Virus record (IMG/VR): IMGVR_UViG_3300044997_001199
Location: 124,001-188,000 of that record
Reading direction: 5' to 3' (one strand)
Length of the DNA stretch: 64,000 nt
A program made the position numbers and the translations under genes. This document shows positions 35,449 through 61,605 of the stretch, piece after piece (position 1 is the stretch's first letter; each line of letters starts with the position of its first letter). A model generated the notes under the pieces. The model had not been told where the DNA came from. It was given only the letters and a program-made list of their open reading frames with translations, and made no database searches.

Positions 35449-36549
35449 TCAAACGTTGGGCAAGGCGTCATAGTCAATGGTGTCAGACATGACTCCTATA
35501 ACATAGTTAGTTGACTCTGACTCCTGGAGCGCAGTTTGTTTCTTGTGAGTTTCCACGTGTTTGTTGAACCACGGTATGGGCGTTGACCGTGGTGCTGGTT
35601 CGTGATACTTGATTCCGATTTCTTTCAGCGCCAGAGAAGCAGTGTAATCAACAAAATCTTTGAGGATTGCAGCGTTGAGACCAATCACCGGTCCTTTGCT
35701 GAACAGATAGTCGGCCCAGACCTTTTCTTCGCGTATCACATCCAAATACATTTGATATACCTCGGATTCACACTCAACTCGTGCCTGAGCGAATCGAGGA
35801 TCTTCCTTAACTGTTTGATTGATTATCCAGGCAGTCCAGTCTCGATGCAGTATTTCATCCTGCAGGATGAGACTGATGATATTGCCATTGCCGATGAAAA
35901 TACGATTTTCTACCATGGCCAGACTGGTAGCAAATGATACCATGAAGCGGAATGCTTCTAGCCCATACGAAGCATTAAGAGCCAACCATATGGCCCGGAT
36001 ATGTTCTTTTTCTGTGACTGGTTCACCGACCTCGCGGCGGCAGTTGATGACGTGCAGTCGGTCATAGTATTCACCGATGTTTGATGCCATGTTGACGATC
36101 TCTGCGGTGTCATGGATGGTATTGAACACATCCCTGGGCACATTGTAGATGTTGCGGATGATGTGGCTGTAGCTACGACTGTGAATATTGGTTTCAAAAA
36201 ATGTCCAATTGTAGACCAAACTTTCCAGTTCGGGAAGGCTCACAACCGGAGTGAAGATCTGGCTGGGTCCGCGACCTTGCAGACTGTCCAGTGCGGTCTG
36301 ACGCAGGAGGTTGGAAGTAAAGATGTGTCGAACTGTGTCAGATGCATCCTTGAAATCTTGCCCGTCCTTGGTCAGAGAAATTTCCTCGGGTACCCAAAAG
36401 AATCCTCGTGCTTCCTGTTCAAACTTTTGCAGTTTATTGTACTTAACTTCTTCGACCCGCTGGATGGTTACTGGACCCTCCGGATCCAAGAACATCTTCC
36501 GATTTAGATAGTCAGTGCGTGTTTTTAAATTGTATTGTTGTTGGCTCAT
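35449..36549 (-). CDS. nrdB: Ribonucleotide reductase class Ia beta subunit
   Basis: FFWVPEE; QTALDS; ETNIHSRSY (radical Tyr); LEAFRF; DEILH; C-terminal QE.E..NY. Confidence 0.97.
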   Translation of the reverse strand: MSQQQYNLKTRTDYLNRKMFLDPEGPVTIQRVEEVKYNKLQKFEQEARGFFWVPEEISLTKDGQDFKDASDTVRHIFTSNLLRQTALDSLQGRGPSQIFTPVVSLPELESLVYNWTFFETNIHSRSYSHIIRNIYNVPRDVFNTIHDTAEIVNMASNIGEYYDRLHVINCRREVGEPVTEKEHIRAIWLALNASYGLEAFRFMVSFATSLAMVENRIFIGNGNIISLILQDEILHRDWTAWIINQTVKEDPRFAQARVECESEVYQMYLDVIREEKVWADYLFSKGPVIGLNAAILKDFVDYTASLALKEIGIKYHEPAPRSTPIPWFNKHVETHKKQTALQESESTNYVIGVMSDTIDYDALPNV

Positions 36550-38867
36550 AATTTACAGGATTCGCATCCTTCCTCGTCGATATATTCGTTTGATACCGGC
36601 AGCAACGATACGTCATTGTCTGCGGCCTTGGCACCTTGTTTGTTAACTAGACTGTAATAAAACGTCTTGAGACCCCAGCGATGTGCCTGCATGAGATTGC
36701 TAGCGATCAAGGTCGTGGGCACTTTTCTTTCAGAAAACCAAGCCGGGTTGTAAAATGTATTGGTCGAAATCGATTGGTCCACGTAGGCAGCAAGCACCGC
36801 AGCAGTTTTGATATACCCGATACAATCTGTTTGTTCCCACATCAGTTGATAGCGATTTTTTAGCTTGTGATACTCAGGAACCACCTGGGTAAATGATCCT
36901 GCCTTACTTTCCTTGGTAGAAATCAGGCTCATGGGCAGTTCGATACCGTTGGTGCTATTGATTACCACTGATGATGACTCCACTGGAGCAATGGCCATCA
37001 AAGTGGCATTTCTCACTCCGTGTTGCTTCATCAGATCGCGCAAGGGTTCCCAATCCAACTCAGGTGCAAAATCGGTCAATTCGTTGACCGCTTTGGCTCG
37101 TAGTTCCCAGGGGAATTTGCCTTGCCCGTAGCGAGTGCGATCGCTGTGCCGGCAAGCGCCGCGTTCCCGGGCCAATTCCACTGTGGACTCAGTGAGATAG
37201 TATGCCTGATGCTCCATCCAGGTCTTGACCTCTTGAAGGGCATCACTTTCGCCGTAGCGCAGGTTTCGCTTGGCATGCCAGTAGGCCAAGTTGGTTATGC
37301 CGATGCCCAGCGGCTGGATTTCTTCGTTGCTGAGCTTGCTCTGAATGCTGAGAAAATCTTGATAATCTAAAATATTGCACAGACTGCGCTGTAGTATACG
37401 ACAGGCCCGACGCATGTCTTCGGGGTTGCGAAATGCTCCCCAATTGATAGAGCCCAATGTACACAGGGCGATACGGCCTTCGGGGTCGTCCAGTCGTTTG
37501 AACGGCCGGGTGGGCAGCAGGATTTCGCAGCAGAGGTTGCTCTGATAAATGGTGTGGTATCCCGGATCAAACGGTCCTTGATTCATGACATTGTCAATGA
37601 ATACCAGATAGATACGTCCAGTGTCAGTGCGTTCTTTGAGTATGCCGCCCTTGAAAACTTCCTCTGCACTCATGACCTTTTTTCTCAATTCTGGCCTGCG
37701 TTCGTATTGTTGATAGAGTTCTTCAAACAACACAGTGTCGCGATAGAATGCTTCGTAGAGATCAGGTACTTCGTTGGGATCAAAGAATGTGATGTTTCCG
37801 CGATTGCGAAATCTACGCCAGAACATGGCATTGAGTACCACTCCATAGTCCATGTGCCGCACACGGGTCTCCTCGGTTCCCTGGTTGTTCTTCAACACAA
37901 TGAGATCATCAAACTGATAGTGCCAGATTGGGTAGAACACCGTGGCCGATGCATTACGGATACCGCCCTGGCTACAACTGCGTAGATCGCCGAACCATTT
38001 CTTTAAAAATGGAATCATGCCAGTGTGCATGATTTCGCCGCCGCGAATGGGTGCGCCCAGTGGACGCAGGCGACCAATTTCCAGACCAATGCCAGCACGT
38101 TTGCTAGCATACTTGGCCATCATCTCGCCGCTGGCAAATATACTGTCAAGATCGTCGTCGCTGCGGATGAGCACACACGAACTGAACTGCTTGGTGGGGG
38201 TGCCCAGGCCGGCCAACACCGGGGTAGCAAGAGTAAACAGCCCATCACTGGCACAGTTATAGTATTCCTTGATGTATCGCATGCGCGACGAATTGGGTTC
38301 TTCTCGGTGAAACACTGTTGCTGCAGCGATCATGTATCTGACTTGAGGAGTCTCGTAGATTTCTTTGGTGGCTCGATTGCGCACCAGATATTTTTCTATC
38401 AACTGCTCGATAGCAGCGTATGAGTACTGCTCGTCCTTGCTGTGATCAATCATGGTGTCCATGCGATCCCAGTCGTCTTCGTTGTACCATTCCACCAGGT
38501 CGGGAGTATAGAAACCCACTGCGATGTTGCGTTTTACGATTTCGTAGAGACGAGTCGGAGCATAGGTGCCATAGACATCTTTGCGCAGCATGGAAACTCT
38601 CTGTTTGCCTGCTACATATTGATAATTGGTATGTCCAACATCGGGATTGGCTTCCACATCAATAAGATCCACGATGGCTCGTAGCGTGATTCCGTCGATT
38701 TCGCGTGTAGAAATGCCATCATAGAAGTGCAACTGTGCCTTGATTTCGATCATTGACTGACTGACATCTGCTGTTCCTGCACAGACCTTGGCAATCTGTG
38801 CCTGCCACTTTTCCAGTGCCAAGGGTTCACGTTGCCCGCTGCGTTTGACAACAGTTATGTTTTTCAT
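36546..38867 (-). CDS. nrdA: Ribonucleotide reductase class Ia alpha subunit
   Basis: ATP-cone VVKRSG; TPVLAG; FSSC; SNLCCEI; AP.ESSS; KTFYY; C-terminal CESC. Confidence 0.98.
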   Translation of the reverse strand: MKNITVVKRSGQREPLALEKWQAQIAKVCAGTADVSQSMIEIKAQLHFYDGISTREIDGITLRAIVDLIDVEANPDVGHTNYQYVAGKQRVSMLRKDVYGTYAPTRLYEIVKRNIAVGFYTPDLVEWYNEDDWDRMDTMIDHSKDEQYSYAAIEQLIEKYLVRNRATKEIYETPQVRYMIAAATVFHREEPNSSRMRYIKEYYNCASDGLFTLATPVLAGLGTPTKQFSSCVLIRSDDDLDSIFASGEMMAKYASKRAGIGLEIGRLRPLGAPIRGGEIMHTGMIPFLKKWFGDLRSCSQGGIRNASATVFYPIWHYQFDDLIVLKNNQGTEETRVRHMDYGVVLNAMFWRRFRNRGNITFFDPNEVPDLYEAFYRDTVLFEELYQQYERRPELRKKVMSAEEVFKGGILKERTDTGRIYLVFIDNVMNQGPFDPGYHTIYQSNLCCEILLPTRPFKRLDDPEGRIALCTLGSINWGAFRNPEDMRRACRILQRSLCNILDYQDFLSIQSKLSNEEIQPLGIGITNLAYWHAKRNLRYGESDALQEVKTWMEHQAYYLTESTVELARERGACRHSDRTRYGQGKFPWELRAKAVNELTDFAPELDWEPLRDLMKQHGVRNATLMAIAPVESSSVVINSTNGIELPMSLISTKESKAGSFTQVVPEYHKLKNRYQLMWEQTDCIGYIKTAAVLAAYVDQSISTNTFYNPAWFSERKVPTTLIASNLMQAHRWGLKTFYYSLVNKQGAKAADNDVSLLPVSNEYIDEEGCESCKL

Positions 38868-38874
38868 TTTTTCC

Positions 38875-39300
38875 TTAGGTAATGCGTTTGACAATATCTT
38901 GTTGGGTGACACTGCGTTTAGTGGTCGGACGATCTGGGCAGATATTTACGATGGTATCTGCTTCCCAATTAAGTGCATATTTTTCTTTATGCAGCAGGAC
39001 TAAATTGTCCGCACCCACTTCAACCAATTTCGCATCCACGATGTCATTTCTTTCTAACATTGCTAGAGTATACATGATTCCCAAGCCTCTAGCAACATTG
39101 CAATATATGTTGTCCTGCAATAGTTGCCAGGGATTTGGCCATTCCCGCCGATCGTCCCAGTGTAGGTAGTAGGTGGTCCACGGGGCCCGGAACCACCAGT
39201 GATTCACACGGGCGAGACAGGATTCTAACTCAAGATCTAAGACCGTGGCACGTAGTTGTGCCCAGTCCGTGAGTCTGGACGTGAAATCAGTGTGCCACAT
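38875..39300 (-). CDS. Hypothetical protein, possible transglutaminase-like Cys motif
   Basis: WP.PWQLL..N.YC.VARG. Confidence 0.6.
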   Translation of the reverse strand: MWHTDFTSRLTDWAQLRATVLDLELESCLARVNHWWFRAPWTTYYLHWDDRREWPNPWQLLQDNIYCNVARGLGIMYTLAMLERNDIVDAKLVEVGADNLVLLHKEKYALNWEADTIVNICPDRPTTKRSVTQQDIVKRIT

Positions 39301-41108
39301 CAGGCCAGATGGTTTAAACTGTAGTAGATAATACCACTGGTTCCAGTCGACGATGCACTGTAGAAAACTGTTGTCACATTTCCTGCGATCGGATCATATG
39401 ATTCAGAAACTGATAGTTGTACCTGTGGGTCCAAATTCTCAACATAATCGTCGCTGTAGGTTGCCACCGCCAGAGAACTGTCATCTGCACTGCCGCCCAC
39501 TGATGTGAGTGTTCCGGTGCGTACGCAGCCTAGCTCTCCAATGGTTCGAGTTATGGTATAATCCATACGGAAAGCCAGGAACCCACCATTGGCCACTGAT
39601 CTGTCCAATGATACTGCAAACAGTGTCTGATCCGTGGCTCCATCTGTTATTGTTGCTTGCTGTCCGGATTCTCGTACATAGGACCCCATCTGTATGTACT
39701 GCCCGCCCGATGTAACGATGCTGGTAGGAATCGTCACATCAAACAGATAGATCCTGGGGTATCCTGGACTTATCTGTGTTTGTGCGACTGTGCGCTGGAA
39801 AGTGTCGCCCAGGCTGATGTTGTCATTGGCATTGATAGAGATTATCGGTGTGGCAGGATTGGCATTGCCAAAGAAATGGTTGCCCACATCGTAAAATGTG
39901 TTGTAGGCCGTGGCATTGAACGAACAATTTTCAATAATCACGCCTTCCTCATAGATGTTGTCAAAAATGTTTTGTACGATCCGGAATCCAGTGGGGCCGC
40001 CGTTGACCGGAGCCGCGTCACCCAGCACTATGCCCTGGTATAGAGTATCAAACTGACCGTTGCTCACTGTGACACCGTGTGTGGCCTGATCGGTGTTGAT
40101 CGCATAAGTGACTCCGACAAATCGACACTTGTCAAGAATGACCTGTCGGCAAGTACGAGCAGATGTGCTCGAAAAACGCACCGCAGCTAGATCTTCGGTA
40201 GCAGTGCCAAGCGATGACTGATCCAGCGGGCCTTGAAAATCCACACTGTCCAGATAAATCTGATCGATCTGTTCCAGCAAACATATGTTATGAGAAACCG
40301 ACGAGTCGTTTCCACTGGTCGCAGTGCGCAGTGCCATGCTAGAAATTTCCACATTGGTAGGATAAGTGGCACCGGCCAGACCGATGTTGACCCCGGTCTG
40401 TTGTTTGCTGTCTGTGGTGCGAACCACATATTCCGGCAATGAAACCGGCGACCAGTACTCTGTATCGTTGAGCAAGATTCCAGTGGCCGGGACCGGCGAC
40501 GTGCTACGATAATAGTTGTCCAGCTCGTCAGCTACCAGCACACCTCCTGCGTAGGCAGTGTTGGCAGCCCAAAGAACGACTTCAAAACTGATGATAGAAC
40601 TGCTAGCGCCTTCGCCGTAGAGTTTGGCATAGGGCGGAATCAACAGAGTATTGGAAATCTTGTAGGTTCCGGCCGGAAAAAACAAACTGCGACGAATCTG
40701 AGTGTTGGATTGCACACAGTATAACTGGAACAGTGCGCGATTAATGGCTGCGGTGTCATCTGTAGCCCCATCGCCGCGCGCACCAAAATCGGTCACGATG
40801 GCATAACTATCCAGCCGACTCTGTAGACTCTGGCTGATTGGCGTGCCCGGGGTGGGTCCAGTTTGCGCTGTGTACCCTGCTGCATCGCCTCGGTAGGTAT
40901 AGGCCGTGGTAAATGCCAACAGGTCAGAAAATTCCGTGAGAATTTCGGTATTTCCGACCACCGGGGCACCTTCGGCCAGAGTACCGTTGCCGATGTAGAG
41001 ACGGCGCTGATCCACAGCCCAGCCAAGCTCTGCGCCGGCCAACGGTTGTGGAAGGTCTTCCTCTAGACCTTTGCGTTGGGTGATTCTACTTACTTGTACT
41101 ATTGCCAC
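39300..41108 (-). CDS. Tailspike/baseplate protein with pectate-lyase-3-like beta-helix
   Basis: N-terminal R.TQRKG...LA.AELGW..D.RRLYIGNG; VTDFGARGDG.TDDTAAINRA; LFFPAGTYKI. Confidence 0.8.
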   Translation of the reverse strand: MAIVQVSRITQRKGLEEDLPQPLAGAELGWAVDQRRLYIGNGTLAEGAPVVGNTEILTEFSDLLAFTTAYTYRGDAAGYTAQTGPTPGTPISQSLQSRLDSYAIVTDFGARGDGATDDTAAINRALFQLYCVQSNTQIRRSLFFPAGTYKISNTLLIPPYAKLYGEGASSSIISFEVVLWAANTAYAGGVLVADELDNYYRSTSPVPATGILLNDTEYWSPVSLPEYVVRTTDSKQQTGVNIGLAGATYPTNVEISSMALRTATSGNDSSVSHNICLLEQIDQIYLDSVDFQGPLDQSSLGTATEDLAAVRFSSTSARTCRQVILDKCRFVGVTYAINTDQATHGVTVSNGQFDTLYQGIVLGDAAPVNGGPTGFRIVQNIFDNIYEEGVIIENCSFNATAYNTFYDVGNHFFGNANPATPIISINANDNISLGDTFQRTVAQTQISPGYPRIYLFDVTIPTSIVTSGGQYIQMGSYVRESGQQATITDGATDQTLFAVSLDRSVANGGFLAFRMDYTITRTIGELGCVRTGTLTSVGGSADDSSLAVATYSDDYVENLDPQVQLSVSESYDPIAGNVTTVFYSASSTGTSGIIYYSLNHLA

Positions 41109-41127: not shown

Positions 41128-41844
41128 TCACATATTTAGTATGTAGTATTGTTCGACTCTTTTCCACCAGGCCCGAGTCCAGTGTTGAAATTCGGCACCT
41201 TCAATTACCCACTGCTGATACTGAGGCGGGGTGCTGTAAACTCCTGATTGAGTTTCTGTGGGCTTTACACACATCAGGATCACTCCGCGTTGTATGTGTG
41301 TGCCATGGATTTCGTTGTGCGCTTCGGCATAGGCCGCCAGTTGCAGTTTGTAATCGTCGATCCATTCCTCGCGCTTGGGACGATTGCTTTGTTTAAAATC
41401 CATGATGGCCGGTGTGCCTTGGTGCAGACCCACGCAATCAGTGGTACCTGCGTAAACCCGAGGAAAATACAAAGGAACTTCTATGCCCCAATATTCTGTG
41501 ACTTGACTGAGTCCGTGTTCTATCACGGTCTGTGCCATGTCGTGGCTGGGCCACGAAAACGGATTTGGTCCTCGCTCTTTCATGGCACCGTTGCGAACAT
41601 AGTGCTCGAGATAGGTGTGCATGCGAGTGCCGCGATTGGCTGCTTCTGTGGTTATGGCCTGTGCCTGTGCATGACCCACGCGATCGCGCCAGGCTTGCAA
41701 GGCTTGGCGTTTTTTCTCGGGTTGTGTGCGATCAAGAATGGTAGTGACCGAGGGCAATCGATCGCCAGTGGGAGTAGCGTATAGGCGCTGCCCGTTGACT
41801 GTTTCTCGAGTTAGTGCCTGATAATCAAATTTTGTGGCGATCAA
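41128..41844 (-). CDS. PD-(D/E)XK exonuclease
   Basis: LPSVTTIL; RGTRMH; EVPL; AGTTDCVG; IMDFKQS; QLAAYA; TTG start. Confidence 0.9.
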   Translation of the reverse strand: MIATKFDYQALTRETVNGQRLYATPTGDRLPSVTTILDRTQPEKKRQALQAWRDRVGHAQAQAITTEAANRGTRMHTYLEHYVRNGAMKERGPNPFSWPSHDMAQTVIEHGLSQVTEYWGIEVPLYFPRVYAGTTDCVGLHQGTPAIMDFKQSNRPKREEWIDDYKLQLAAYAEAHNEIHGTHIQRGVILMCVKPTETQSGVYSTPPQYQQWVIEGAEFQHWTRAWWKRVEQYYILNM

Positions 41845-42167
41845 ACGGAAAAACTTTCTCCACAGCCACATCTGGCACTTTCATTGGGGTTAATAAACTC
41901 AAACCCTTCATTTAATCCCTTTTTAGTCCAGTCCATGGTCAGGCCCTGGAGGTACACCAGGCTTTTACCATCGGCCCAGACTGAAACTCCATGACTTTCA
42001 TAATGAAAATGGTCACAGGTGGTGGGTGAGTGGTCCACATACTCCAGAGTGTATGCCAGGCCAGAGCAGCCAGTGGTTCTTACTCCAACCAAGATACCTA
42101 GACCTTTACCTCTTTTATCCAGGGATTCTCTGACCTTTGCAGCGGCTGTTTCAGTTAAAGAAATCAT
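41841..42167 (-). CDS. iscA: Fe-S cluster assembly protein IscA
   Basis: GVRTTGCSGLAY; F.F.NPN...RCGCGESF. Confidence 0.96.
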   Translation of the reverse strand: MISLTETAAAKVRESLDKRGKGLGILVGVRTTGCSGLAYTLEYVDHSPTTCDHFHYESHGVSVWADGKSLVYLQGLTMDWTKKGLNEGFEFINPNESARCGCGESFSV

Positions 42168-43126: not shown

Positions 43127-44239
43127 TTATCTGCGAGCTCGACCCAGCGTGCCTTTGGTGCCCATGGACTTTCCGTCAGCAGGCTCTTCCGTGTCCAGAT
43201 CAGTGTCCACAGCAAGGTCCATGCTGTTGTCAGGAGGCATGGACATGTTGGTGTTGCCGGCGTCCATGGCTGCGTCCAAGGTCGGCGTCGCTGGCTGTTG
43301 TCCTGTGACAATCCCCAAGGCCACTTCCAACTGTTGTTTGGCAGCCTGTAGGTTTTTTACTAGACCAGTCAGTGCCGCAGTGGCATCGGTATTGAATTGA
43401 TTGGCCTGATCCATGCCGGTTTGGTTACGTATAGAATCTACCAAGGCCGGTAATTCTTTGAACTGCATCTCAGTGGTGTCCTCCAGCATGCCTTGCATCT
43501 TGTCTACCATGTCCTGAGCGGCCAGCACTACCTGTGCTTGCTGCACTTCGCTTTCGTTGAGAGTGCGATAGGCACTGCGCAGGCGGTTTTCTTGTTGCAT
43601 CAACGCAGCACTGACCACGAGTTTTTGTTCGTCGGGGCTGAGGGTTTGACCACTCTGGCTCTTCTTGAGCGCAGCAGCCAATTTGGGATCCTTGACGTTG
43701 ACCGCAGGCTTGGCAGCAGCAGGCTTGGCCGCGGCCGAACCTGATGATTGGGCAGAGGTAGCCGCACCTGTGGTAGGTACCATTTCTTCACGGATTTCTT
43801 GTTGCATCAACGCAGCACTGACCACGAGTTTTTGTTCGTCGGGGCTGAGGGTTTGACCACTCTGGCTCTTCTTGAGCGCAGCAGCCAATTTGGGATCCTT
43901 GACGTTGACCGCAGGCTTGGCAGCAGCAGGCTTGGCTGCGGCCGAACCTGATGATTGGGCAGAGGTAGCCGCACCTGTGGTAGGTACCATTTCTTCACGG
44001 ACTCGACTGGCCAACGCAGTTTCCATCACTACCAACTTGAGATATGCCGGGTCCTGCTCACGAAAATGATGAATCACAGTTTGTTTGTGTTCTTGCATGA
44101 GACCCCGCACGCGATCTAACATCTGGCAGGCCTGGCGCAGCGTCAGCTGGTCAAATGCGATACGAGTCCCAAAGTGATTTTCAAATACCTTGGTAGCATG
44201 GCACACTGGATCAGACGCAGCGAGTTCTTGCAGTTTCAT
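43127..44239 (-). CDS. Probable prohead core/scaffolding protein with 69-aa internal duplication
   Basis: MKLQEL leader; coiled-coil, Ala/Gln-rich; L-x-E sites. Confidence 0.6.
   Translation of the reverse strand: MKLQELAASDPVCHATKVFENHFGTRIAFDQLTLRQACQMLDRVRGLMQEHKQTVIHHFREQDPAYLKLVVMETALASRVREEMVPTTGAATSAQSSGSAAAKPAAAKPAVNVKDPKLAAALKKSQSGQTLSPDEQKLVVSAALMQQEIREEMVPTTGAATSAQSSGSAAAKPAAAKPAVNVKDPKLAAALKKSQSGQTLSPDEQKLVVSAALMQQENRLRSAYRTLNESEVQQAQVVLAAQDMVDKMQGMLEDTTEMQFKELPALVDSIRNQTGMDQANQFNTDATAALTGLVKNLQAAKQQLEVALGIVTGQQPATPTLDAAMDAGNTNMSMPPDNSMDLAVDTDLDTEEPADGKSMGTKGTLGRARR
43588..44001. repeat. 207-bp tandem duplication (206/207 identical)
   Basis: Units 43588-43794 and 43795-44001; single difference C43730/T43937. 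Confidence 0.95.
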
Positions 44240-44951: not shown

Positions 44952-45374
44952 TCAAATCTCCGTTAACGTATTTACCGATTGGAACCAAATATTGCGGTCA
45001 GGATCCTGGATCGACACAACAGATTTTACCCCGGGCGATTCGTCCAGGTTAGTGATCATAGGAATACCCTCGCAGTCGCGATATAGATCTTCCAATTCTG
45101 AGCCACCAAACACTCCGTCATTTTCAACAGTAAATTCAAAACACCAGTGAGTGTCAATCTTGACCGGCACAGAAATGTCCTGCGGTTGGCATCTCAATCC
45201 GATGATTTGCAGCAAGGTTTCCCAGTTGCGCTGTTGATTTCGACTGCGATTCCAAGACTGCTGACCATCCACTAGGTTTCCGTTTCGATCACGGAATGGA
45301 ATCTGCGCGACACGGTAGTGGCCAATCACGCCTGTGGCTGCACAGTCAAACAGAGTTTTGCATCGAAATCGCAT
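44952..45374 (-). CDS. Hypothetical late protein
   Basis: ATG 7 nt after TAAATA box. Confidence 0.65.
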   Translation of the reverse strand: MRFRCKTLFDCAATGVIGHYRVAQIPFRDRNGNLVDGQQSWNRSRNQQRNWETLLQIIGLRCQPQDISVPVKIDTHWCFEFTVENDGVFGGSELEDLYRDCEGIPMITNLDESPGVKSVVSIQDPDRNIWFQSVNTLTEI

Positions 45375-45392
45375 GGCAAGATATTTAACGGC

Positions 45393-45423
45393 AAACAAAA
45401 ACCCCGGATTTTTATATCCGGGG
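45393..45423 (-). terminator. Strong rho-independent terminator
   Basis: CCCCGGAT-N6-ATCCGGGG then TTTTTGTTT on minus strand. Confidence 0.85.
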
Positions 45424-45447
45424 TCATTGTGCAACTGCTGACAACTA

Positions 45448-45846
45448 TTACGATGTGGCTAACTTGAAACCAACACTGGCAGCCGAATCCAGTTGGAAGC
45501 CAGTGTAAGTCACATTGGCAGCCGACAGCAGAGTTGCGGCGTTGGCATATGCGCCGGCAGGGTAGATGCCCAGCGACAAGCGTGTTCCGTCGACTTGATA
45601 GAAAGCCAGGGTCGAAGTCTGTTGCACTGCTTGCAGAACGGCAGCAACGTAACCGTTGGCCGAACCGATCACACCCTGTTGTGTGGCCATGGTAGCATTA
45701 GCGGTAAGCGAGAAGAAGTCTAGCTTGGGACCGGCCATGTTGACCGGAGTACCGGCAGTGGCCGTGGTAGGAGCGATATGACCGTTTTGTACGTCGATCG
45801 CAAATACTGGTTGTGCATCACCATTTACACGAGTTAATGAAGCCAT
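45448..45846 (-). CDS. Probable abundant virion structural protein
   Basis: Own TAAATA promoter, AAGGAG SD, own terminator; Ala/Thr/Gly-rich. Confidence 0.7.
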   Translation of the reverse strand: MASLTRVNGDAQPVFAIDVQNGHIAPTTATAGTPVNMAGPKLDFFSLTANATMATQQGVIGSANGYVAAVLQAVQQTSTLAFYQVDGTRLSLGIYPAGAYANAATLLSAANVTYTGFQLDSAASVGFKLATS

Positions 45847-45914
45847 TTTGTTTCTCCTTGATATATGGGGATTGACCCCTACTGTTATTTAGCGCCCGGA
45901 CCAAAAATCAAAAC

Positions 45915-47792
45915 CTAGGGATTGTTTCTTGCACGGTTCTTGGCTGTGAAATCAAATCGGTTGACGGCCTTGGCATAGCCCGCAGGTGTGCTCATGACCC
46001 AGCCTTCGTTGCCCGGACTCTGCTGATCCAGTTGTTCAAGCACTTGCATTTTGAGATCGTGCAACATCAAAAACAGTGCAAATGCCGCGATCATGCCGTC
46101 GGTGTTGGTCGTGGGCGACCGTAGATATTCCACAATGTTTTTGAATTTGCGTTCCGTGACACGTGTAGGCAACCATTGCAAAAAGCCCGACAGCAGATCG
46201 TTGAAGTTTCCGGTTCCGATCCGATGATTGATGTAGTCAACGCATAGTCTTGCCAGATCCGTGAGTTGCTGCCGTCTCATCTCCACCGGATTGAACAAGG
46301 TATCAATGGCTGTGCCGTGTTGTCGCAGAGTCTGGCCGATGCGCTGTACCAATTTGCTGTCCACGCCCACGTTCTTGGCACGTATGGGCTCCAGTAACAA
46401 CAGTCCCGGTACCTCATTGAATTTCACTCTGGCTATAGGCTGTTTGGGTTCACCCTGATCGGCATACATGCTGTGCATGGCTATGCCTGTTGTGCTATCG
46501 CCGATGCGTTGTCCCAGGGCAGATCTGGCTGGTATGCGATATTCCACGGTGTTGGGCTGAAACACATAGTTACCGGCCTGCAGCAGCGGCGTAGAAGTAT
46601 ACAATAGGTCGCCCTTGACATAACCACGGAAGTTGCTGGGGAGGCTTTGTTCCAACAAGGGGAACAGACTGGCGTACAATGCCATGAGTTCCCGGCGTTC
46701 GCCCGATCGCTGTTGTTGTATGCGAACCATCATGGCCGGCGAAGTGGCCAGACCATCGTAACCGCGAGCTTCAAATCCCGAACCATCGGTCAGCACAAAC
46801 TCACCGGTGGCCGGTTTGCGTCCAAATATCACTGCTGGTTTTCCGTCCCACTTGACCGTGGTAGTGGCTGCGGGATCGTCGACCACGTCGTGGATGATCG
46901 CCAAGGCCTGCTCGACTCCGGCTGAGGCTCGGCGGAACACCAGGTCTTCGAGGTGCTCAATGCCCTTGGCACGACCGCCCACACCGGGTTCGATTTCTTC
47001 CAATATCGCGGTGTCTTCAACCAAGGCCTGCATGCCTTGGTTGACAATGCGATCTCGCAGTCGCGCAATGAAGCTGACATCTGTTTCCTGCACTTGTTCA
47101 TCAAAGGGTATGCCTTCGCGTGCAGCATAGTCGCGAAAATCACGTAGTTTTTCTTCGCGACGAGGATCAGCGGCCAGTGCACGCACGATGCGCTCCACTG
47201 ACGCAAGATCTTCGGCGGCTGCTTGACTGTGCAGCAATCGCTTGGCGATTTCTGCAGGATCATCAGTGATCACACGTTCAGTGGCACGGTCAACCAGACC
47301 GTGCGTGACACTGATCTTGTATCCCAGAGACCTAGCCACACTGCTCAACAGCACGTTGCGAGTCGCGCCCTTGTAGGCCGACCCAGGATCCGCACGCATC
47401 ATGAACTTGGAGTAAGTGGGTTTGGGCACAAACATGAAATCGGTCTGCACATAGCCGCGGCGTGGCTCGCCACCAATGGGTGTGAGGAAATGCACTGCGG
47501 TGCCTGACCGCCGGACCCACTCGCGAGGATCTTGCCCTTGCTGACGAGCCCACTGTCCAAGTTGTTCAGCAAAGGTATTTTTGTCCACAGCTGTGCTGTC
47601 TACCGCAAGATCCAGATCGCCCGATGTAGGGCGAAGCCCAGTTGACCCTAGCATGTTGTTTTCTAGTTCAAGACCAGTGATAGATTCCAGCCAACGCACT
47701 GTGGACACGACATCGGCCAGGGCAATGCGCTGAGTGCGAGGTTGCCCTTTGGCATCTTTGAATACGTTGCCACCTTCGGCCAGCTGCATCAA
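45915..47792 (-). CDS. Two-domain protein: Pol-beta-like nucleotidyltransferase + DUF6267/KxDG ligase-like domain
   Basis: LGSTGLRPTSGDLDLAVD...VQTDFMF; then GIEHLEDL...TVKWDG.PAVIFG...KGDLLY...EGWV...K.V.R. Confidence 0.7.
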   Translation of the reverse strand: MMQLAEGGNVFKDAKGQPRTQRIALADVVSTVRWLESITGLELENNMLGSTGLRPTSGDLDLAVDSTAVDKNTFAEQLGQWARQQGQDPREWVRRSGTAVHFLTPIGGEPRRGYVQTDFMFVPKPTYSKFMMRADPGSAYKGATRNVLLSSVARSLGYKISVTHGLVDRATERVITDDPAEIAKRLLHSQAAAEDLASVERIVRALAADPRREEKLRDFRDYAAREGIPFDEQVQETDVSFIARLRDRIVNQGMQALVEDTAILEEIEPGVGGRAKGIEHLEDLVFRRASAGVEQALAIIHDVVDDPAATTTVKWDGKPAVIFGRKPATGEFVLTDGSGFEARGYDGLATSPAMMVRIQQQRSGERRELMALYASLFPLLEQSLPSNFRGYVKGDLLYTSTPLLQAGNYVFQPNTVEYRIPARSALGQRIGDSTTGIAMHSMYADQGEPKQPIARVKFNEVPGLLLLEPIRAKNVGVDSKLVQRIGQTLRQHGTAIDTLFNPVEMRRQQLTDLARLCVDYINHRIGTGNFNDLLSGFLQWLPTRVTERKFKNIVEYLRSPTTNTDGMIAAFALFLMLHDLKMQVLEQLDQQSPGNEGWVMSTPAGYAKAVNRFDFTAKNRARNNP

Positions 47793-48517
47793 ATCTTGCC
47801 CTGTCTACGCAACGTGGCAATAATCTGTGCGTTTTTGGGGTCAGCCGGATCCAACATTTCTCCTCCTATGGAAATCTGACCACCGGACTGTACTGTGACC
47901 CGAGGAGCTCCAGCCCGTTGGCGGCGCGGAGGCGACTGAAATGTTGCTAGGCTAGCTATGGTATAAAGTTTTTCTGCAGTGGTTTGCCACAAGCGAGAAA
48001 GTTTGGCCTGCTGAGCGTTTGAAGGTTCTGTGGCCACTGTGGCCAGTATGGTACCCATCGCGGTTTCCAGTTCTCGAACTGCATCAAGAGCTACTTTTGC
48101 TCCTTTGCCGCCATAGGCCTGAGGGTCGACCAATTTTGAAATTTCTCGGTAATCTTGTAATTCATCGTTGGACATCTTGTTCAGCGTGGAATTAAGTTGT
48201 GACACCAGGACACGCTTCAGTTGATCTCGAGGTATGTCCTTGACGCTGGTCACTCCGCGAGAACTGTAGGCTTGTGTCATGGCCTGTTGTATGGCCTGGC
48301 TCCACCCTGCATTGAGACTCTGTGCTATCTGATTGACCAGGGGCGCACTGGCTTGTGCGGCCCGACTTTGGGGATCAATGGCGAATCCCGGTGCATTTGA
48401 AGGTTGCGTGATACCTGCGGTACCGGCCTTCTGCGCCAGACGATTGACCGCACCTTGAAGGAACGATGATTGTGCACCTGGGTTGGTAAAGACATTGACA
48501 ATTTCATTGATCAGCAT
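47789..48517 (-). CDS. Probable internal head protein
   Basis: MLINEI leader; Gln/Ala-rich. Confidence 0.55.
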   Translation of the reverse strand: MLINEIVNVFTNPGAQSSFLQGAVNRLAQKAGTAGITQPSNAPGFAIDPQSRAAQASAPLVNQIAQSLNAGWSQAIQQAMTQAYSSRGVTSVKDIPRDQLKRVLVSQLNSTLNKMSNDELQDYREISKLVDPQAYGGKGAKVALDAVRELETAMGTILATVATEPSNAQQAKLSRLWQTTAEKLYTIASLATFQSPPRRQRAGAPRVTVQSGGQISIGGEMLDPADPKNAQIIATLRRQGKI

Positions 48518-48752
48518 GCACTCTCCTCACTGATCTGATGAATTTGCCTGGTTCTTTCATGCGCATGGCATTGAGAAGTTTGCGAGTGAGAATTTCTGCC
48601 TGCTCGGGAGAATATTCAGACTCGATCTGTTCGATCAAGCGTATGGCAGCATCAATGAGATTGTTGGCTCGGCTTTCGATCAAAAGCCGGCGGTCACGCT
48701 CGACGTAGAGGCTGTCCAGTTCTTCTAGTATGCTGCGAGTCTTTTTTTGCAT
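48504..48752 (-). CDS. Conserved hypothetical protein (MQKKTRSILEEL...)
   Basis: TAAATA box upstream; intact 82 aa. Confidence 0.75.
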   Translation of the reverse strand: MQKKTRSILEELDSLYVERDRRLLIESRANNLIDAAIRLIEQIESEYSPEQAEILTRKLLNAMRMKEPGKFIRSVRRVHADQ

Positions 48753-51994: not shown

Positions 51995-53380
51995 TTACGA
52001 TTTAATTTGATTCAATAGTTGTTTGAGTTTGTTTGACTGTACTTCTGCTGTGATCTTGGGCGTATCTTTGGCAGTTTCTTGCATGGTGCTACGTGCCTTG
52101 ATCGACTCCATTATGGCCGATGCAGGATTTCTGGCGTGGCCTTCTTGTGCTTCCTCGCCGAGATCAGTGATACGCATGGTTTCGACGTTGTATTCTAGAT
52201 CGATCTTCTGGCCCACGCCGGTCGAGCTGCGCGATTTCATGCACTGAATCTGATAGCGGCCACGCTCGCGCATGGCACGACTGGTAAAGATACCAAACAC
52301 ATTGTCTGCGGTGTTGATCTTGCTGATACCGCCCGAAATATGACTGTGGTCAAACTCAATCTCTTCCACCGCAGATCGATTCAATTGACTGGCAGTCACA
52401 AACAACACATTGAGTTCTTTGGCCAGATTTCTCAGTTCTTCACTTACATACTTGTCTTTGACAAATAGGTCATTGGGCGATACCTTGGCTGACACCGGCA
52501 TCAAGAGATCCAGATAGTCAACCATGACAAAGTCCACACGGATACCTGTCTGTATCTGCAGCTCCTTGAGATAACTGCGGATATCATTTACTGTGCTTTG
52601 TGCAGACAAGGCCTTGACTCGATATTGCCCGGCTTTTTTGGCTACCAGTCGAACTTTGAGTTCTGTGGTATCGATATCTTTGCGAATATCTTTGGTTGAC
52701 ATATTAGTCAGCATGGCATCGGTTCTCAGTGCACACAGTTCTTCGCTGAGTTCCAAACTTACATACACCCCCGACAGGCCCTGCTGCAACCAATTCAATG
52801 CCAGGTTCAGCATTACCAGGCTTTTGCCCGATCCTGACCCACCTGCAAAGATATTAAGTTCTCCGCGGCTGAATCCACCATAGAGTAACCGGTCCAGTGT
52901 AGACCATCCTGTGCTGACCTGACCACCAGAATTGAAATATCGATTGATACGATCTCGGGGATCGGCCCAGTAGTCTGTGCCCATGTCCCGCGTGAGGCTG
53001 ATTTGCACTGCATCTTTGATCAGTTTTTCTACCGGGTCATATTCACCTTTTTCTAGCAGGTCCGCTGATTTGAGAATGGCTCGTTCCAGTTCCTGTCTAC
53101 GTGTAAATGATTCAAACTCAGTGAGAAACCAATCAAAATGTCCTTCATTCAGATCGGGTATAGATTCTAATTTCGTACCAGTGGCTGCCGTGATCTGAGC
53201 GCGGTCAGGCATAGTGCGGAATTCGTCGCTGTGCCGTTGAATGAATCTAGCGGTATCGCGAAGGCTACGATCAAAATTGTCCGGATTGAAGATGTTTTGT
53301 ACGCGCACGTAACTCTGTGCATCCTCTAGCATCATCTCCAAAAACAATCGCTGAACATCAACTCCGTAATCTTTGAGCAA
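51995..53380 (-). CDS. Replicative DNA helicase (DnaB/T4 gp41-like)
   Basis: GGSGSGKS; SLELSE; VDYLDL; TASQLNRS; SGGISK..TAD; TTG start. Confidence 0.95.
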   Translation of the reverse strand: MLKDYGVDVQRLFLEMMLEDAQSYVRVQNIFNPDNFDRSLRDTARFIQRHSDEFRTMPDRAQITAATGTKLESIPDLNEGHFDWFLTEFESFTRRQELERAILKSADLLEKGEYDPVEKLIKDAVQISLTRDMGTDYWADPRDRINRYFNSGGQVSTGWSTLDRLLYGGFSRGELNIFAGGSGSGKSLVMLNLALNWLQQGLSGVYVSLELSEELCALRTDAMLTNMSTKDIRKDIDTTELKVRLVAKKAGQYRVKALSAQSTVNDIRSYLKELQIQTGIRVDFVMVDYLDLLMPVSAKVSPNDLFVKDKYVSEELRNLAKELNVLFVTASQLNRSAVEEIEFDHSHISGGISKINTADNVFGIFTSRAMRERGRYQIQCMKSRSSTGVGQKIDLEYNVETMRITDLGEEAQEGHARNPASAIMESIKARSTMQETAKDTPKITAEVQSNKLKQLLNQIKS

Positions 53381-54359
53381 GCTGGCGCCTCCGTAGTTCA
53401 ATTTTGATCCGGCTGGTTTCCCGGGCCTGCATTATAGTTAGCACAGTGGCCAACTGGCCCCAACGAACCACTGCATCATTGACATCCTTGACATCGCTGG
53501 GCCAGTCAGGCATTGATACTGCCCATCCCAGTTCTATGGCCCGATCCACCAGGCGCAGGCCGGCTTCGTCCTGGTCTGGCACCACAGTGATCGCACGGTC
53601 CAGACTGCGGATCAATCGTGCCTGTGTGTCGGAAATATCAGCATGAAGCACTGCTAGCCCCGACACGCTCAAGGCATCAAACACACCCTCGGTCACGATC
53701 ACATGTTTCCAGGTCGGGCGTTGTAGGTCTGTGCCAAACACATAACCAGGCTGGATGTCGTGGATGTACTTGGGTGTGCGGTCGTCCAACATGCGCGAAC
53801 TGTAACCCACTATGACATTGTCATAGGTAAATGGCACTATGACCTGGGGACGGGTCCAATGCACACCGTCGTTTTTCTTCACGTAACCAAACCGGACAGT
53901 CATGAGCGGATAATCCGCGGGCACTGCACGGCGTCTTGCATAGTGCCACTCTGCTTCGTGCTCGGGTGTCAGCAGCTCGGCACCAGGAGGCAAATCGCGT
54001 TCCTCAAAACGGATGCTTTGCGACTCGTTGGCTGTGCGTTGCCGATCGTCCAGGATGCCCTGGACATCCCGATGTCGCAGACTTTCCAGATTGGCGCGTT
54101 CAATTTCTTCCTGCGGTACTCCCAACCATGACAGCAGCCGACGAGACTTGAAACTTAGTGTCCGACCTTGTATAAAGTTAGCGGTATATCCACAATTGAA
54201 ACAATGATACCCCCACCCCCGATCGGACACCTTGATTCCACCGCGGCTGCGCCGATCAGCCGAAGTGCCGTTGTGCACACAACAAGGAGCATCAAAACTG
54301 ATCCAACCGCTGGCCGAGGCCTTGCGGCGCGCAGGAACATAGGTTAGAATATCTAACAT
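53358..54359 (-). CDS. DNA primase (T4 gp61-like)
   Basis: CCVHN...YHCFNCG Zn finger; VTEGVFDA; PDQDEAG; KDVND (TOPRIM). Confidence 0.93.
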   Translation of the reverse strand: MLDILTYVPARRKASASGWISFDAPCCVHNGTSADRRSRGGIKVSDRGWGYHCFNCGYTANFIQGRTLSFKSRRLLSWLGVPQEEIERANLESLRHRDVQGILDDRQRTANESQSIRFEERDLPPGAELLTPEHEAEWHYARRRAVPADYPLMTVRFGYVKKNDGVHWTRPQVIVPFTYDNVIVGYSSRMLDDRTPKYIHDIQPGYVFGTDLQRPTWKHVIVTEGVFDALSVSGLAVLHADISDTQARLIRSLDRAITVVPDQDEAGLRLVDRAIELGWAVSMPDWPSDVKDVNDAVVRWGQLATVLTIMQARETSRIKIELRRRQLAQRLRS

Positions 54360-54390
54360 GTCCATATTGTAACAGAACTCAAATCAACGA

Positions 54391-60147: not shown

Positions 60148-61605
60148 TCATCTCCATTCTAGCCTTTCCTGTGAAAATGGATATTGTGCGTCGCGATAGT
60201 AGGCCTTGCGCTTGGTCAAATGTCGTTTGGCGAACCTACACGTGGAGGTTATATCCCAGATCTCCACGTGGTCCTTGTCTTCGGCTTTTCGAATACCGCG
60301 GCCAATCGACTGAATAACTCGGACAAAACTCTTGCCAGGCTCCACGAGCACAAGATTAAAAATACGAGGAATATTGATACCAACAGCAGCAACCCCATAT
60401 GTAGCGACGATAATTTTGTCGCTAGCCTCTGAAACTTCGTCATAGTGATCTCGTCTTTCGGCTGATTTTGTAGACCCTGATATGAATACTGCGTTCGGTA
60501 ATTTACTTACCAGAGCTTCGCCGGCGGCGATTCGATCTACCAAGATCAGGGTATTGCCTGTGTTCTTGACCTTGTTGACCAAATCAGCAATGGCGTCGAG
60601 TCGGCCGGGTTCTTCGAGCAGATACTTGAGTTCGCTTTGATAGTTGGAAAATTCAACGGAATCCACCAGTTGCACGACATTGACATGACACTGTGCCAAC
60701 ACTCCGCGACCCTGCAGTTCGGCAGCGGCCAACCTGGACACCACTGGCCCCAGACTTACCAACAATGACTGACTCTCAAATGCTTCTTTGGGTATGGTGC
60801 CTGTGAGTCCCCAACGCATGGGCACTTGACTCATCACCCCGGTGAGCAGGCTTTTGAGCGCGTCGGCCTTGGCCATGTGCACTTCGTCCACGATCACACA
60901 GATCACGTTTTCTAAAAATTCTTGTATGGTAATAAGTGCAGTCTGATTGCGTGTGTTTTTCAGCAACACATTGAGACTCTGCCAGGTGCAGATGGTATGT
61001 TGATGTCCAAACTCTTTGCGGTCACCAAAAAACACTCCTACGTCAAGGCCAAGATTACGATAATCTACCTCGGTCTGCGTGACCAGACTTTTGTTAGGAA
61101 CGATCACGATGCTACGTCCGTACTGCCCTGCGGCATCACTTAGCGCAGCGGTCATGATGGTTTTGCCTGCACCTGTGGCCACTTCCTGCACACACTGCGG
61201 GTTAGCCAGAAAGTTGTTGATGATTTCAATCTGATAATCGCGTAGTAATATGGCCTGACCTGCGGCAGGGTGTCCCTTGGGCCATGTCCGGTCTTGGTAT
61301 GTGGTTTCAACTACTGAGTTAAATTCAAAAGTAGTGCGGTAGTTTCGTTGGTCGTCTAGTTCTATGTCGTACCCATCCTCTTCCAATATGGGCAGTATGT
61401 CGGGCAAGAGATTTACGTAGGTACTGCCGCCCAATTGAAAATAGGCTACCTTGCCATCCCAGCGTCCTAACCGCACTGCGGGCAAATAGCGGGCATATGG
61501 CACATCATATTTGAATCGATTGACCAACCGACGACGCGTATCAAGGTCCAGACCTTCTAATTTGATGTTGACTTCGTCGCGGATAATCAGTTGAGCTTTT
61601 TTCAT
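60148..61605 (-). CDS. uvsW: SF2 DNA helicase, UvsW-like
   Basis: LRDYQ; ATGAGKT; VDEVH; GLTGT; ATYG.AAVGINIP; QSIGRGIR. Confidence 0.92.
   Translation of the reverse strand: MKKAQLIIRDEVNIKLEGLDLDTRRRLVNRFKYDVPYARYLPAVRLGRWDGKVAYFQLGGSTYVNLLPDILPILEEDGYDIELDDQRNYRTTFEFNSVVETTYQDRTWPKGHPAAGQAILLRDYQIEIINNFLANPQCVQEVATGAGKTIMTAALSDAAGQYGRSIVIVPNKSLVTQTEVDYRNLGLDVGVFFGDRKEFGHQHTICTWQSLNVLLKNTRNQTALITIQEFLENVICVIVDEVHMAKADALKSLLTGVMSQVPMRWGLTGTIPKEAFESQSLLVSLGPVVSRLAAAELQGRGVLAQCHVNVVQLVDSVEFSNYQSELKYLLEEPGRLDAIADLVNKVKNTGNTLILVDRIAAGEALVSKLPNAVFISGSTKSAERRDHYDEVSEASDKIIVATYGVAAVGINIPRIFNLVLVEPGKSFVRVIQSIGRGIRKAEDKDHVEIWDITSTCRFAKRHLTKRKAYYRDAQYPFSQERLEWR

Follow-up and report, generated by a model that had tools for sequence, protein, structure and literature searches.

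Viruses that pair a family X DNA polymerase (PolX) with a ligase are already known. African swine fever virus (ASFV) encodes Pol X, a minimal protein of 174 amino acids (aa) with no more than a palm and fingers, which works in functional partnership with a ligase of the same virus. The PgVPolX protein of Phaeocystis globosa virus combines PolX with an NAD+-dependent DNA ligase in one chain, and was shown to carry out gap filling and nick sealing in base excision repair (BER) (PMC5537341). In jumbo phages and bacteria, RlaP, a nucleotidyltransferase (NTase) of the Pol-beta type, is genomically coupled to the ligases Rnl1/Rnl2 for repair, and adds 1-2 nucleotides before ligation (PMC7824862; bioRxiv 10.64898/2025.12.29.696909). 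Bacterial LigD, with polymerase, phosphoesterase and ligase domains, combines nucleotide addition, end processing and ligation in one multidomain break-repair protein. A 2022 review of phage DNA polymerases gives ASFV as the sole viral family X example and no phage family X enzyme (PMC8775771). We describe here a phage gene that shares features with each of these systems. It is found in a stretch of 64,000 nucleotides (positions 124,001 to 188,000 of IMG/VR virus record IMGVR_UViG_3300044997_001199; this whole stretch is called the window), and encodes what appears to be a minimal PolX core fused to a DUF6267 domain, a Pfam family with function listed as unknown. The C-terminal half is a bona fide member of that family, and is here given a ligase-type fold and a link to a PolX-like partner.

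How does this locus compare with the known systems? The N domain, as ASFV Pol X, consists of palm and fingers; identity between the two is ~13%, and the phage domain has extra conserved segments at its N-terminal (EGGNVFK) and C-terminal (helical) ends. Unlike the ASFV proteins, the phage enzymes are on one polypeptide or in adjacent genes, the host is bacterial and the ligase is a DUF6267 domain without an OB domain or an N-terminal DNA-binding domain. PgVPolX, a viral single polypeptide with a Pol-beta-like core and a ligase, is the direct architectural precedent. Its ligase, however, is homologous to the NAD+-dependent LigA, whereas the phage module is DUF6267, which is ATP-ligase-like; PgVPolX also has dRP/AP-lyase activity, whereas the phage protein carries no 8-kDa lyase domain. 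The two fusions arose independently. With the RlaP systems, the phage pair shares the genomic coupling of a Pol-beta NTase to a ligase, and RNA ligases are the nearest matches of the DUF6267 fold in one structural scan (VIA). However, the N domain has PolX-like fingers and no PF10127 (RlaP) match, and the DUF6267 domain has no PF09414 (RNA_ligase) match. The phage family also resembles LigD in its make-up, as some relatives carry HAD/NT5C or PD-(D/E)XK end-processing domains. LigD differs in having a polymerase of the archaeo-eukaryotic primase type instead of PolX, in the OB domain of its ligase and in its cooperation with Ku.

The gene is a single open frame at window positions 45915-47792 of the minus strand, with its stop codon at 45915-45917. 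Counted from an alternative TTG start at 47792 there are 625 codons, and residue numbers follow this 625-aa version. The ATG at 47789 is almost certainly the true start, because it has a 1-base overlap with the TGA of the upstream open reading frame (ORF) in the sequence TGATG, and because the database copy is 624 aa long. The main features of the gene are the following.

45915..47789, minus strand: PolX-like/DUF6267 fusion gene, 624 aa (ORF list and translation; an identical 624-aa database protein exists)
47088..47783, minus strand: N domain, residues 4-235, predicted PolX-type palm and fingers (AlphaFold2 model and fold searches)
47775..47783, minus strand: L4-A5-E6, an [LIVM]xE motif directly before the invariant GGNVFK (translation)
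47610..47648, minus strand: GS-x8-DLD (G49-D61), the triphosphate-binding Gly-Ser and the first two catalytic carboxylates (translation, conservation)
47439..47441, minus strand: D118 (VQTDF), third catalytic carboxylate (conservation; strand 114-122 of the model)
46962..47087, minus strand: inter-domain linker, residues 236-277, with a conserved helix FIARLRDRIVNQGM and LVE / ILEE (low-pLDDT helix and coil)
46995-47006, minus strand: ILEE in the linker (translation)
45936..46961, minus strand: C domain DUF6267, residues 278-619, a putative ligase-type covalent nucleotidyltransferase (adenylyltransferase) (Pfam PF19782, AlphaFold2 model)
46842..46853, minus strand: motif I KWDG (314-317), with K314 as predicted nucleotidyl-accepting lysine (K, D and G 59/59)
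46020..46358, minus strand: all-helical insert (residues 479-591, ~110 aa) that separates the motif III/IIIa region from motif IV (model helices 210-322)
45969..46007, minus strand: motif IV EGWV (596-599) and motif V K608, then R612 (conservation)

In the translation, GSTGLRPTSGDLD spans residues 49-61, IEHLED residues 278-283 and KGDL residues 393-396; LAE is found at residues 4-6 and ILEE at 263-266. All motifs quoted in a first-pass annotation of the sequence are thus present where they had been placed, and they are conserved. The source record is 215 kb long and 61% complete by estimate, which indicates a jumbo phage of roughly 350 kb; near-full-length relatives of the fusion protein are on contigs of 340-356 kb. 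A megablast comparison of the gene with 50,697 phage records gave no match, and phmmer and profile hmmsearch of either half against Protein Data Bank (PDB) sequences gave noise only. PHROGs assigns the protein to an unannotated family, and the N-half by itself has no match in Pfam or PHROG.

The N domain can nevertheless be placed by its predicted structure. Conservation was counted over 61 diverse sequences for the N domain and 59 for the C domain, and AlphaFold2 was run on alignments of 59-61 such homologues. G49 and D61 are each present in 60/61 sequences, D59 and D118 in 59/61. The palm motif of family X, hG[GS]-x(8-13)-DxD with a third carboxylate, is present, and in the AlphaFold2 model (pLDDT 90.2) the palm superposes on that of PolX. 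The fingers subdomain of PolX type, which sets PolX apart from other Pol-beta NTases, is also seen in the predicted structure. A Foldseek search of the PDB with the model returned 159 chains at E<1e-3, the top 50 being all PolX (Thermus PolX, Pol lambda, Pol beta). The VIA scan, which is independent of Foldseek, likewise has only PolX enzymes in its top 10 (Z 7.4-10.5, nine of them at least 8.3). The best VIA match is Pol beta 140-335, aligned to model residues 13-200 with Z 10.5; terminal deoxynucleotidyl transferase (TdT, Z 10.1) and ASFV PolX (5hr9, Z 9.1 over 157/176 chain residues) are also found. The ten PolX alignments cover 156-178 residues each within model positions 1-234, and have a common core at 13-200. 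In contrast, TUTases, CD-NTases, MenT, PAP and CCA enzymes match the palm only (residues 24-130, ~80-100 residues) with Z no higher than 7.0. With the N domain as query, BFVD and the ESM Atlas connect unannotated phage proteins with clusters of giant-virus and bacterial proteins labelled 'DNA polymerase family X', and some of the structurally related Atlas clusters carry PF14792/PF14791.

The domain is thus a minimal family X DNA polymerase (palm and fingers) as far as the model can tell, a narrower assignment than a generic Pol-beta NTase. It begins ~45 residues before the GS motif and the Pol beta alignments begin at 140, i.e. the 8-kDa dRP-lyase and HhH subdomains are absent; these subdomains are found in cellular PolX but not in ASFV Pol X. 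About 35 extra helical residues are present at the C-terminal end. Three conserved blocks, S-x-Y-K-G-x-x-R, G-Y-K-I-S-x-x-H-G-L and D-P-x-x-I-A-x-x-L-L-G, resemble, at the level of sequence, the YFTGS/helix-N, KGxxLxEyGL and (S/T)ExxIFxxLG motifs of PolX. RlaP (PF10127) gave no match to the N domain, either in a search at E 10 or in the Pfam scan. The half had initially been read as a member of the Pol-beta superfamily akin to CCA enzymes, CD-NTases and MNT toxins. Superfamily membership is borne out by fold and motifs; the CCA-adding enzyme, CD-NTase or MNT toxin identity is rejected, because such matches stop at the palm and have lower Z, and is replaced by PolX palm and fingers. The presence of both PolX subdomains shifts the likeliest substrate toward templated gap filling, and as a role of the fusion enzyme, repair of DNA is no less likely than repair of tRNA.

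The C domain is recognized by Pfam as DUF6267 (PF19782) over residues 278-619, with E 4.8e-28 and 99 bits (gathering threshold 27), and covers profile positions 4-371/376. The residues expected of a lysine-nucleotidylating enzyme are highly conserved. K314, D316, G317, E596, G597 and V599 are invariant (59/59), as are D336, Y418, H440 and K581, and D395 of motif III (KGDLLY, 57/59), R325 of motif Ia (FGR, 57/59), K608 (57/59) and R612 (58/59) are nearly so. Motifs Ia, III, IV and V occur in order on an NTase fold, where each was matched to its counterpart by inspection and not by superposed coordinates. The AlphaFold2 model (pLDDT 94.3) has an NTase core broken by the helical insert (model 210-322), after which come the hairpin of motifs IV and V and, at the end, a short helix. 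The insert, which holds the invariant K581, is a candidate nucleic-acid-binding module that may stand in for the absent OB domain.

Fold searches place the domain among ligases. The first 50 Foldseek matches in the PDB are ATP-dependent DNA ligases (probability up to 0.99). The same holds for the first 30 in Swiss-Prot, except for two RNA-editing ligases and MJ0414, which is uncharacterised. In the VIA scan the top 32 matches are all of the covalent-NTase fold, i.e. RNA ligases, DNA ligases, capping enzymes and the snurportin cap-binding domain. DNA ligases have Z 6.0-6.8 and capping enzymes ~5; the ASFV ligase (Z 6.3) and the ligase domain of Mycobacterium tuberculosis LigD (Z 5.3) are among the matches. 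RNA_ligase PF09414 does not match the domain. DUF6267 therefore appears, from its model and motifs, to be a ligase-type enzyme of new, OB-less architecture, and the fold data on the C domain do not decide between DNA and RNA. Model comparison of each half, proposed in the first-pass annotation, has thus placed the N-half among Pol-beta-type folds and the C-half among ligase-type folds. The ligase-like reading of the latter, with motifs I, III, IV and V and membership in DUF6267, agrees with Pfam, conservation and predicted fold, and motif Ia can now be added.

Are the two domains together by chance? An exhaustive phmmer search with the two-domain query (clusters at 50% identity, E up to 1e-3) yielded 1,347 representatives, and hidden Markov models (HMMs) of both halves were applied to the 147 best of these. 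The architectures are N-C in 52, C alone in 48, N alone in 38, C-N in 7 and an interrupted N domain in 2. Wherever stand-alone genes were inspected, the partner gene is adjacent; for example, one 229-aa N gene is followed by a DUF6267 gene after 3 bp, and another N gene, of 248 aa, runs into the start of a DUF6267 gene of 376 aa. Because the modules are fused in either order or adjacent, they represent a conserved functional pair, whatever the order or fusion state. The fusion protein itself keeps 60-84% identity over >120 clusters, found on contigs of at most 356 kb. The proposed fusion of two enzymes, a Pol-beta NTase and a lysine-nucleotidylating ligase-like domain, is well supported by motifs, models and conservation, and the domain make-up also speaks for the suggested nucleic-acid end- or break-repair architecture.

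A third enzyme is often associated with the pair. A HIGH-motif NTase of ~194 aa (Pfam CTP_transf_like, weakly PPAT/NMNAT-like) is found before or after the pair in many longer relatives, and is fused to it as a third domain in ~26. The present phage encodes its own copy as a separate gene outside the window.

Record G000 89656-90801 (L019 3656-4801), minus strand: HIGH-motif NTase, 381 aa, CTP_transf_like (homology E 2.9e-34 to the fused third domain)

Other domains fused in relatives are NT5C/HAD phosphatase, DUF2608, amidoligase, DUF5661, Tad3, ART-PolyVal, PD-(D/E)XK and Cu/Zn superoxide dismutase, and some polyvalent-type proteins with the N domain have a sub-threshold match to crAss cargo 2. 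Of these, the HAD/NT5C phosphatase and PD-(D/E)XK nuclease partners fit end processing. Two unusual fusions were seen in the ESM Atlas: in one viral cluster of 65 members DUF6267 is joined to Cu/Zn superoxide dismutase, and in a cluster labelled archaeal the PolX-like domain is joined to a PD-(D/E)XK nuclease. In some relatives the N domain is interrupted: three copies carry an intein (Pfam PF14890), and in two representatives the HMM match is broken into two segments, a pattern consistent with the targeting of a conserved catalytic gene by inteins or insertions.

The region had at first been described as a head-gene region. Taken literally, this does not hold, as no head genes were found in the window and the neighbours that could be identified are mostly enzymes of DNA metabolism.

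16213-17244, minus strand: UvdE UV-damage endonuclease (PF03851, E 1.6e-28; PHROG 'endonuclease')
20978-22222, minus strand: UDP-glucose dehydrogenase-like protein, an auxiliary sugar-nucleotide enzyme (phrog_9148, E 1.7e-84)
30783-32201, minus strand: canonical ATP-dependent DNA ligase (PF01068, E 1.8e-22; phrog_114, E 3.6e-91)
35449-38912, minus strand: ribonucleotide reductase (RNR) small and large subunits (Pfam/PHROG)
39300-41108, minus strand: pectate-lyase-like protein, 602 aa, with a tailspike-like domain (PF12708, E 1.6e-16)
41128-41871, minus strand: PD-(D/E)XK exonuclease (Pfam/PHROG)
47789..48517, minus strand: upstream ORF, 242 aa, translationally coupled to the fusion gene (ORF list)
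51995-53401, minus strand: DnaB (Pfam/PHROG)
53358-54365, minus strand: primase (Pfam/PHROG)
60148-61605, minus strand: helicase (Pfam/PHROG)

The order DnaB, fusion gene, exonuclease, pectate-lyase-like protein and RNR is kept in a 348-kb relative. The position of the pectate-lyase-like gene between exonuclease and RNR, in both genomes, is an odd site for a tail-spike-like protein. The relative also has NifU_N and Fe-S biosynthesis (IscA-like) genes between the fusion cluster and the exonuclease (L006/L007 12854-13566), and a radical-SAM gene upstream of DnaB. The coupled upstream ORF has a 256-aa counterpart in the same relative. It has no match in Pfam or PHROG scans and is predicted to be poorly structured (Atlas model pLDDT 0.47); the idea that it is the HIGH-NTase partner or another recognisable enzyme was dropped after Pfam/PHROG, homology and model checks. 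The record also carries 14 tRNA genes in two clusters and a tmRNA gene, all outside the window (45066-48492 and 198608-202584 of the record); the tag peptide of the tmRNA is ANDDVYAEDLRLAA.

Since a canonical ligase is present at 30783-32201, the DUF6267 domain represents a second ligase-type enzyme of the phage, and the fusion protein was rejected as its replicative DNA ligase. UvdE, the exonuclease, the PolX-ligase and the DNA ligase could together make up a complete UVDE-initiated excision repair route.

A different situation is found in the T4-like cyanophages, four of which were examined (S-CAM9, P-TIM40, S-RSM4 and MED4-213). In all four, a stand-alone DUF6267 gene is present downstream of gp41 and MazG, directly followed by a gene for the HIGH-motif (CTP_transf_like) NTase.

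S-CAM9, L002 3983-6306: DUF6267 and HIGH-NTase genes
P-TIM40, L016 3483-5747: DUF6267 and HIGH-NTase genes
S-RSM4, L017 3480-5236: DUF6267 and HIGH-NTase genes
MED4-213, L018 3480-5242: DUF6267 and HIGH-NTase genes

No N domain was found in the 8-9-kb loci around DUF6267 of these phages; the S-CAM9 gene upstream of DUF6267, considered as a divergent N domain, was rejected by BLASTP and HMM. No DNA ligase of PF01068 or PF01653 was found anywhere in the four genomes. The presence of DUF6267 there without a canonical ligase suggests that it is able to work on DNA, and it is a candidate for the 'missing' ligase of these phages. By tblastn, DUF6267 is found in ~200 cultured cyanophage records.

What would the fusion protein do? 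From the observed folds, conserved catalytic residues and linkage of the modules by fusion or adjacency, we infer activities, substrate and pathway as follows. With moderate confidence, the protein can be viewed as a bifunctional strand-break repair enzyme for gap filling and nick sealing, with DNA slightly favoured over RNA as its substrate; RNA/DNA hybrids may also be acted on. The N domain would add one or a few nucleotides to the 3'-OH of a gap by means of D59, D61 and D118 and two metal ions. The DUF6267 domain would self-nucleotidylate on K314, pass the nucleoside monophosphate (NMP) to the 5'-phosphate and then close the nick, the helical insert possibly substituting for the OB domain of classical DNA ligases. 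The setting may be short-patch DNA repair after incision and excision, e.g. by the phage UvdE and PD-(D/E)XK exonuclease, or after attack by host nucleases. The separately encoded HIGH-NTase may belong to the same functional set, as in many relatives.

DNA is favoured because PolX is a templated, duplex-binding polymerase fold, because two viral precedents, ASFV and PgVPolX, pair PolX with a ligase for BER, because the gene is situated among DNA enzymes in a phage with UvdE and an exonuclease, and because the four DUF6267 cyanophages examined have no other DNA ligase. Several observations weigh against gap filling and sealing of DNA. The phage already has a canonical DNA ligase, such that the need for a second one is not obvious, and the 14 tRNA genes and tmRNA gene would be compatible with RNA repair. 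RNA ligases lead the VIA matches of the C domain (NgrRnl 8.0, Trl1 7.2, REL1 6.9, T4 Rnl1 6.9, Rnl2 6.7), with a margin over DNA ligases of at most 1.2 Z. The OB domain and motif VI, present to our knowledge in all characterised DNA ligases, are absent from the C domain, the model of which ends 15 residues past motif V, and the fold-search TM is low (~0.24), which is attributed to the helical insert. In the phage's own genome, DNA_ligase_A_M (PF01068) matches the canonical ligase and not the fusion ORF, and DNA_pol_B_palm (PF14792) matches nothing even at E 10. There is no sequence-level match to the Pfam PolX palm, to RNA_ligase or to PDB sequences, and the domain assignments therefore rest on predicted structure and motifs. 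Neither an AP endonuclease nor a dRP-lyase domain or polynucleotide kinase turned up in association with the family. In the literature searched, no experimental characterisation of the PolX-like/DUF6267 pairing was found, and DUF6267 as a term returned no papers.

Could the substrate be RNA? The PolX-like domain would then restore lost 3' nucleotides of tRNA and DUF6267 would rejoin the halves, countering host anticodon nucleases, as a functional analogue of the RlaP and Rnl pairs of jumbo phages. This was the core of what the first-pass annotation had deduced; we consider it less likely than DNA, but a serious alternative. The C domain is OB-less with a helical appendage as in RNA ligases, RNA ligases are its top VIA matches, and an Atlas feature search named only RNA_ligase PF09414 (score 0.77, a lead only). 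A separate canonical DNA ligase and the tRNA genes (14, with tmRNA) are consistent with an RNA role, Pol-beta NTases beside RNA ligases add 1-2 nucleotides to damaged RNA (PMC7824862; bioRxiv 10.64898/2025.12.29.696909), and fusions to HAD-type phosphatases would suit the healing of 3' ends. However, the N domain is not RlaP, its palm and fingers are far closer to templated DNA polymerases than to any RNA-specific NTase, its gene neighbours are DNA enzymes and the T4-like cyanophages carry DUF6267 without a canonical DNA ligase. Polynucleotide kinase and 2H/cyclic phosphodiesterase were not found fused or in the neighbouring ORFs tested (Pfam/PHROG), the rest of the 215 kb not having been scanned for the kinase. 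A role outside polynucleotides, in which the pair and the HIGH-NTase would synthesize a small molecule (NAD+/ADPr-related counter-defence) or NMPylate proteins, appears highly improbable. The recurrent fusion to or adjacency with a CTP_transf_like (PPAT/NMNAT-like) domain would agree with it, as would the Tad3, ART-PolyVal or amidoligase domains of some relatives and the proposal that Pol-beta NTases of polyvalent proteins act on proteins (PMC5512222). But PolX-type fingers and a full set of ligase motifs (Ia, III, IV, V) typify enzymes that act on polynucleotides, and the structural matches to CD-NTase, MenT and KNT stop at the palm. The NMPylating effector, also suggested at first from the sequence, is disfavoured on the same grounds.

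A further question is where the protein acts. The L-x-E sites noticed in the first-pass annotation before both domains (LAE and ILEE) are real and are conserved family-wide. The N domain starts with [LIVM]xEGG in 281/290 of its N-terminal copies, and so it does in 38/38 internal copies, which have unrelated sequence upstream. In 41/47 C-only or C-N proteins, an [LIVM]xE lies no more than 14 residues from the H-x-E-D with which the C domain begins, and 214 of 221 N-C linkers contain one; the next residue is usually G, A or S. Both sites of the fusion protein fall in low-confidence (low-pLDDT) segments of the model that are presumably exposed; the presence of the motif does not by itself prove cleavage. 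Prohead proteases of the S77 (T4 gp21) type cut after (L/I)xE. Genes for such proteases were found in PA5oct, S-CAM9 and Atu_ph07, which carry the family.

The cluster around the fusion gene offers a second hint. The small ORFs around it are syntenic with PA5oct EST35_0225-0237, and the N domain corresponds to EST35_0231 (hhalign probability 99%).

43127-44239, minus strand: homologue of PA5oct EST35_0237 (BLASTP E 3e-14; weak PHROG 'virion structural protein')
44952-45434, minus strand: homologue of PA5oct EST35_0234 (BLASTP E 8e-5)
48504-48752, minus strand: homologue of PA5oct EST35_0225 (BLASTP E 2e-18)

In PA5oct, 10/15 products of the cluster, including 0231, 0234 and 0237, are annotated as 'structural protein, ESI-MS/MS'. 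The fusion-gene cluster, located between replication genes, may encode a conserved group of proteins that associate with the virion and are possibly ejected. MIJ3 virion proteomics identified four major proteins only.

Are the enzymes, then, packaged in the virion, whole or cut at [LIVM]xE by an S77 protease, and injected to act before phage gene expression? Such packaging, also proposed in the first-pass annotation, concerns localisation and processing only and is compatible with a DNA or an RNA substrate; we think it unlikely. The conservation of [LIVM]xE before both domains, in segments presumably exposed, is circumstantial evidence for it, as are the annotation of the distant PA5oct N-domain homologue and homologues of two neighbouring ORFs as virion-detected (PMC7318152), the occurrence of the N domain in polyvalent-type proteins with ART-PolyVal, Tad3, DUF5661 and sub-threshold crAss cargo 2, and the S77 proteases encoded by phages that carry the family. 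Yet the PA5oct mass spectrometry was very sensitive, and its list of 93 proteins takes in 'virion-unrelated enzymes' (PMC7318152). The EGGNVFK block is conserved well past the Glu, more than a cleavage site requires, and the segment is therefore probably structural or catalytic. The L-x-E counts come from related sequences and are not independent, because the sequences are homologous. The cyanophage DUF6267 proteins begin at the domain itself, without a leader. The N-domain gene is ~69 kb from the protease gene in PA5oct, and here it is among replication genes. Neither an S77 protease nor a capsid gene of the gp23 type could be detected in the partial genome (215 kb), with PA5oct, S-CAM9 and Atu_ph07 as positive controls. 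A broader and still more doubtful proposal is that of a capsid 'first-aid kit', in which PolX-like and ligase-like modules, sometimes with HIGH-NTase, phosphatase or ART modules, are made as one or a few polypeptides, separated by a T4-type prohead protease at the [LIVM]xE boundaries and injected, and in which DUF6267 is also the missing ligase of cyanophages. If true, this kit would mend nicked, gapped and UV-damaged DNA or cleaved RNA before phage gene expression.

To return to the strand-break repair enzyme, a viral PolX with a ligase is already known as a kind, and the present variant is undescribed in the literature searched. What is new are PolX cores that occur phage-wide without a Pfam model, together with the OB-less DUF6267 ligase and the HIGH-NTase, and with conserved L-x-E boundaries. 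The findings suggest that phages hold a large clade of minimal PolX enzymes, invisible to Pfam models. An enzyme that fills and seals on one polypeptide, and whose ligase has a new architecture, would also be attractive as a reagent. The conserved L-x-E boundaries and the virion detection of a homologue make the prospect of injected repair enzymes directly testable. DUF6267 gains a concrete, testable function, that of an OB-less ligase, and it may explain how abundant marine cyanophages seal Okazaki fragments or repair UV damage.

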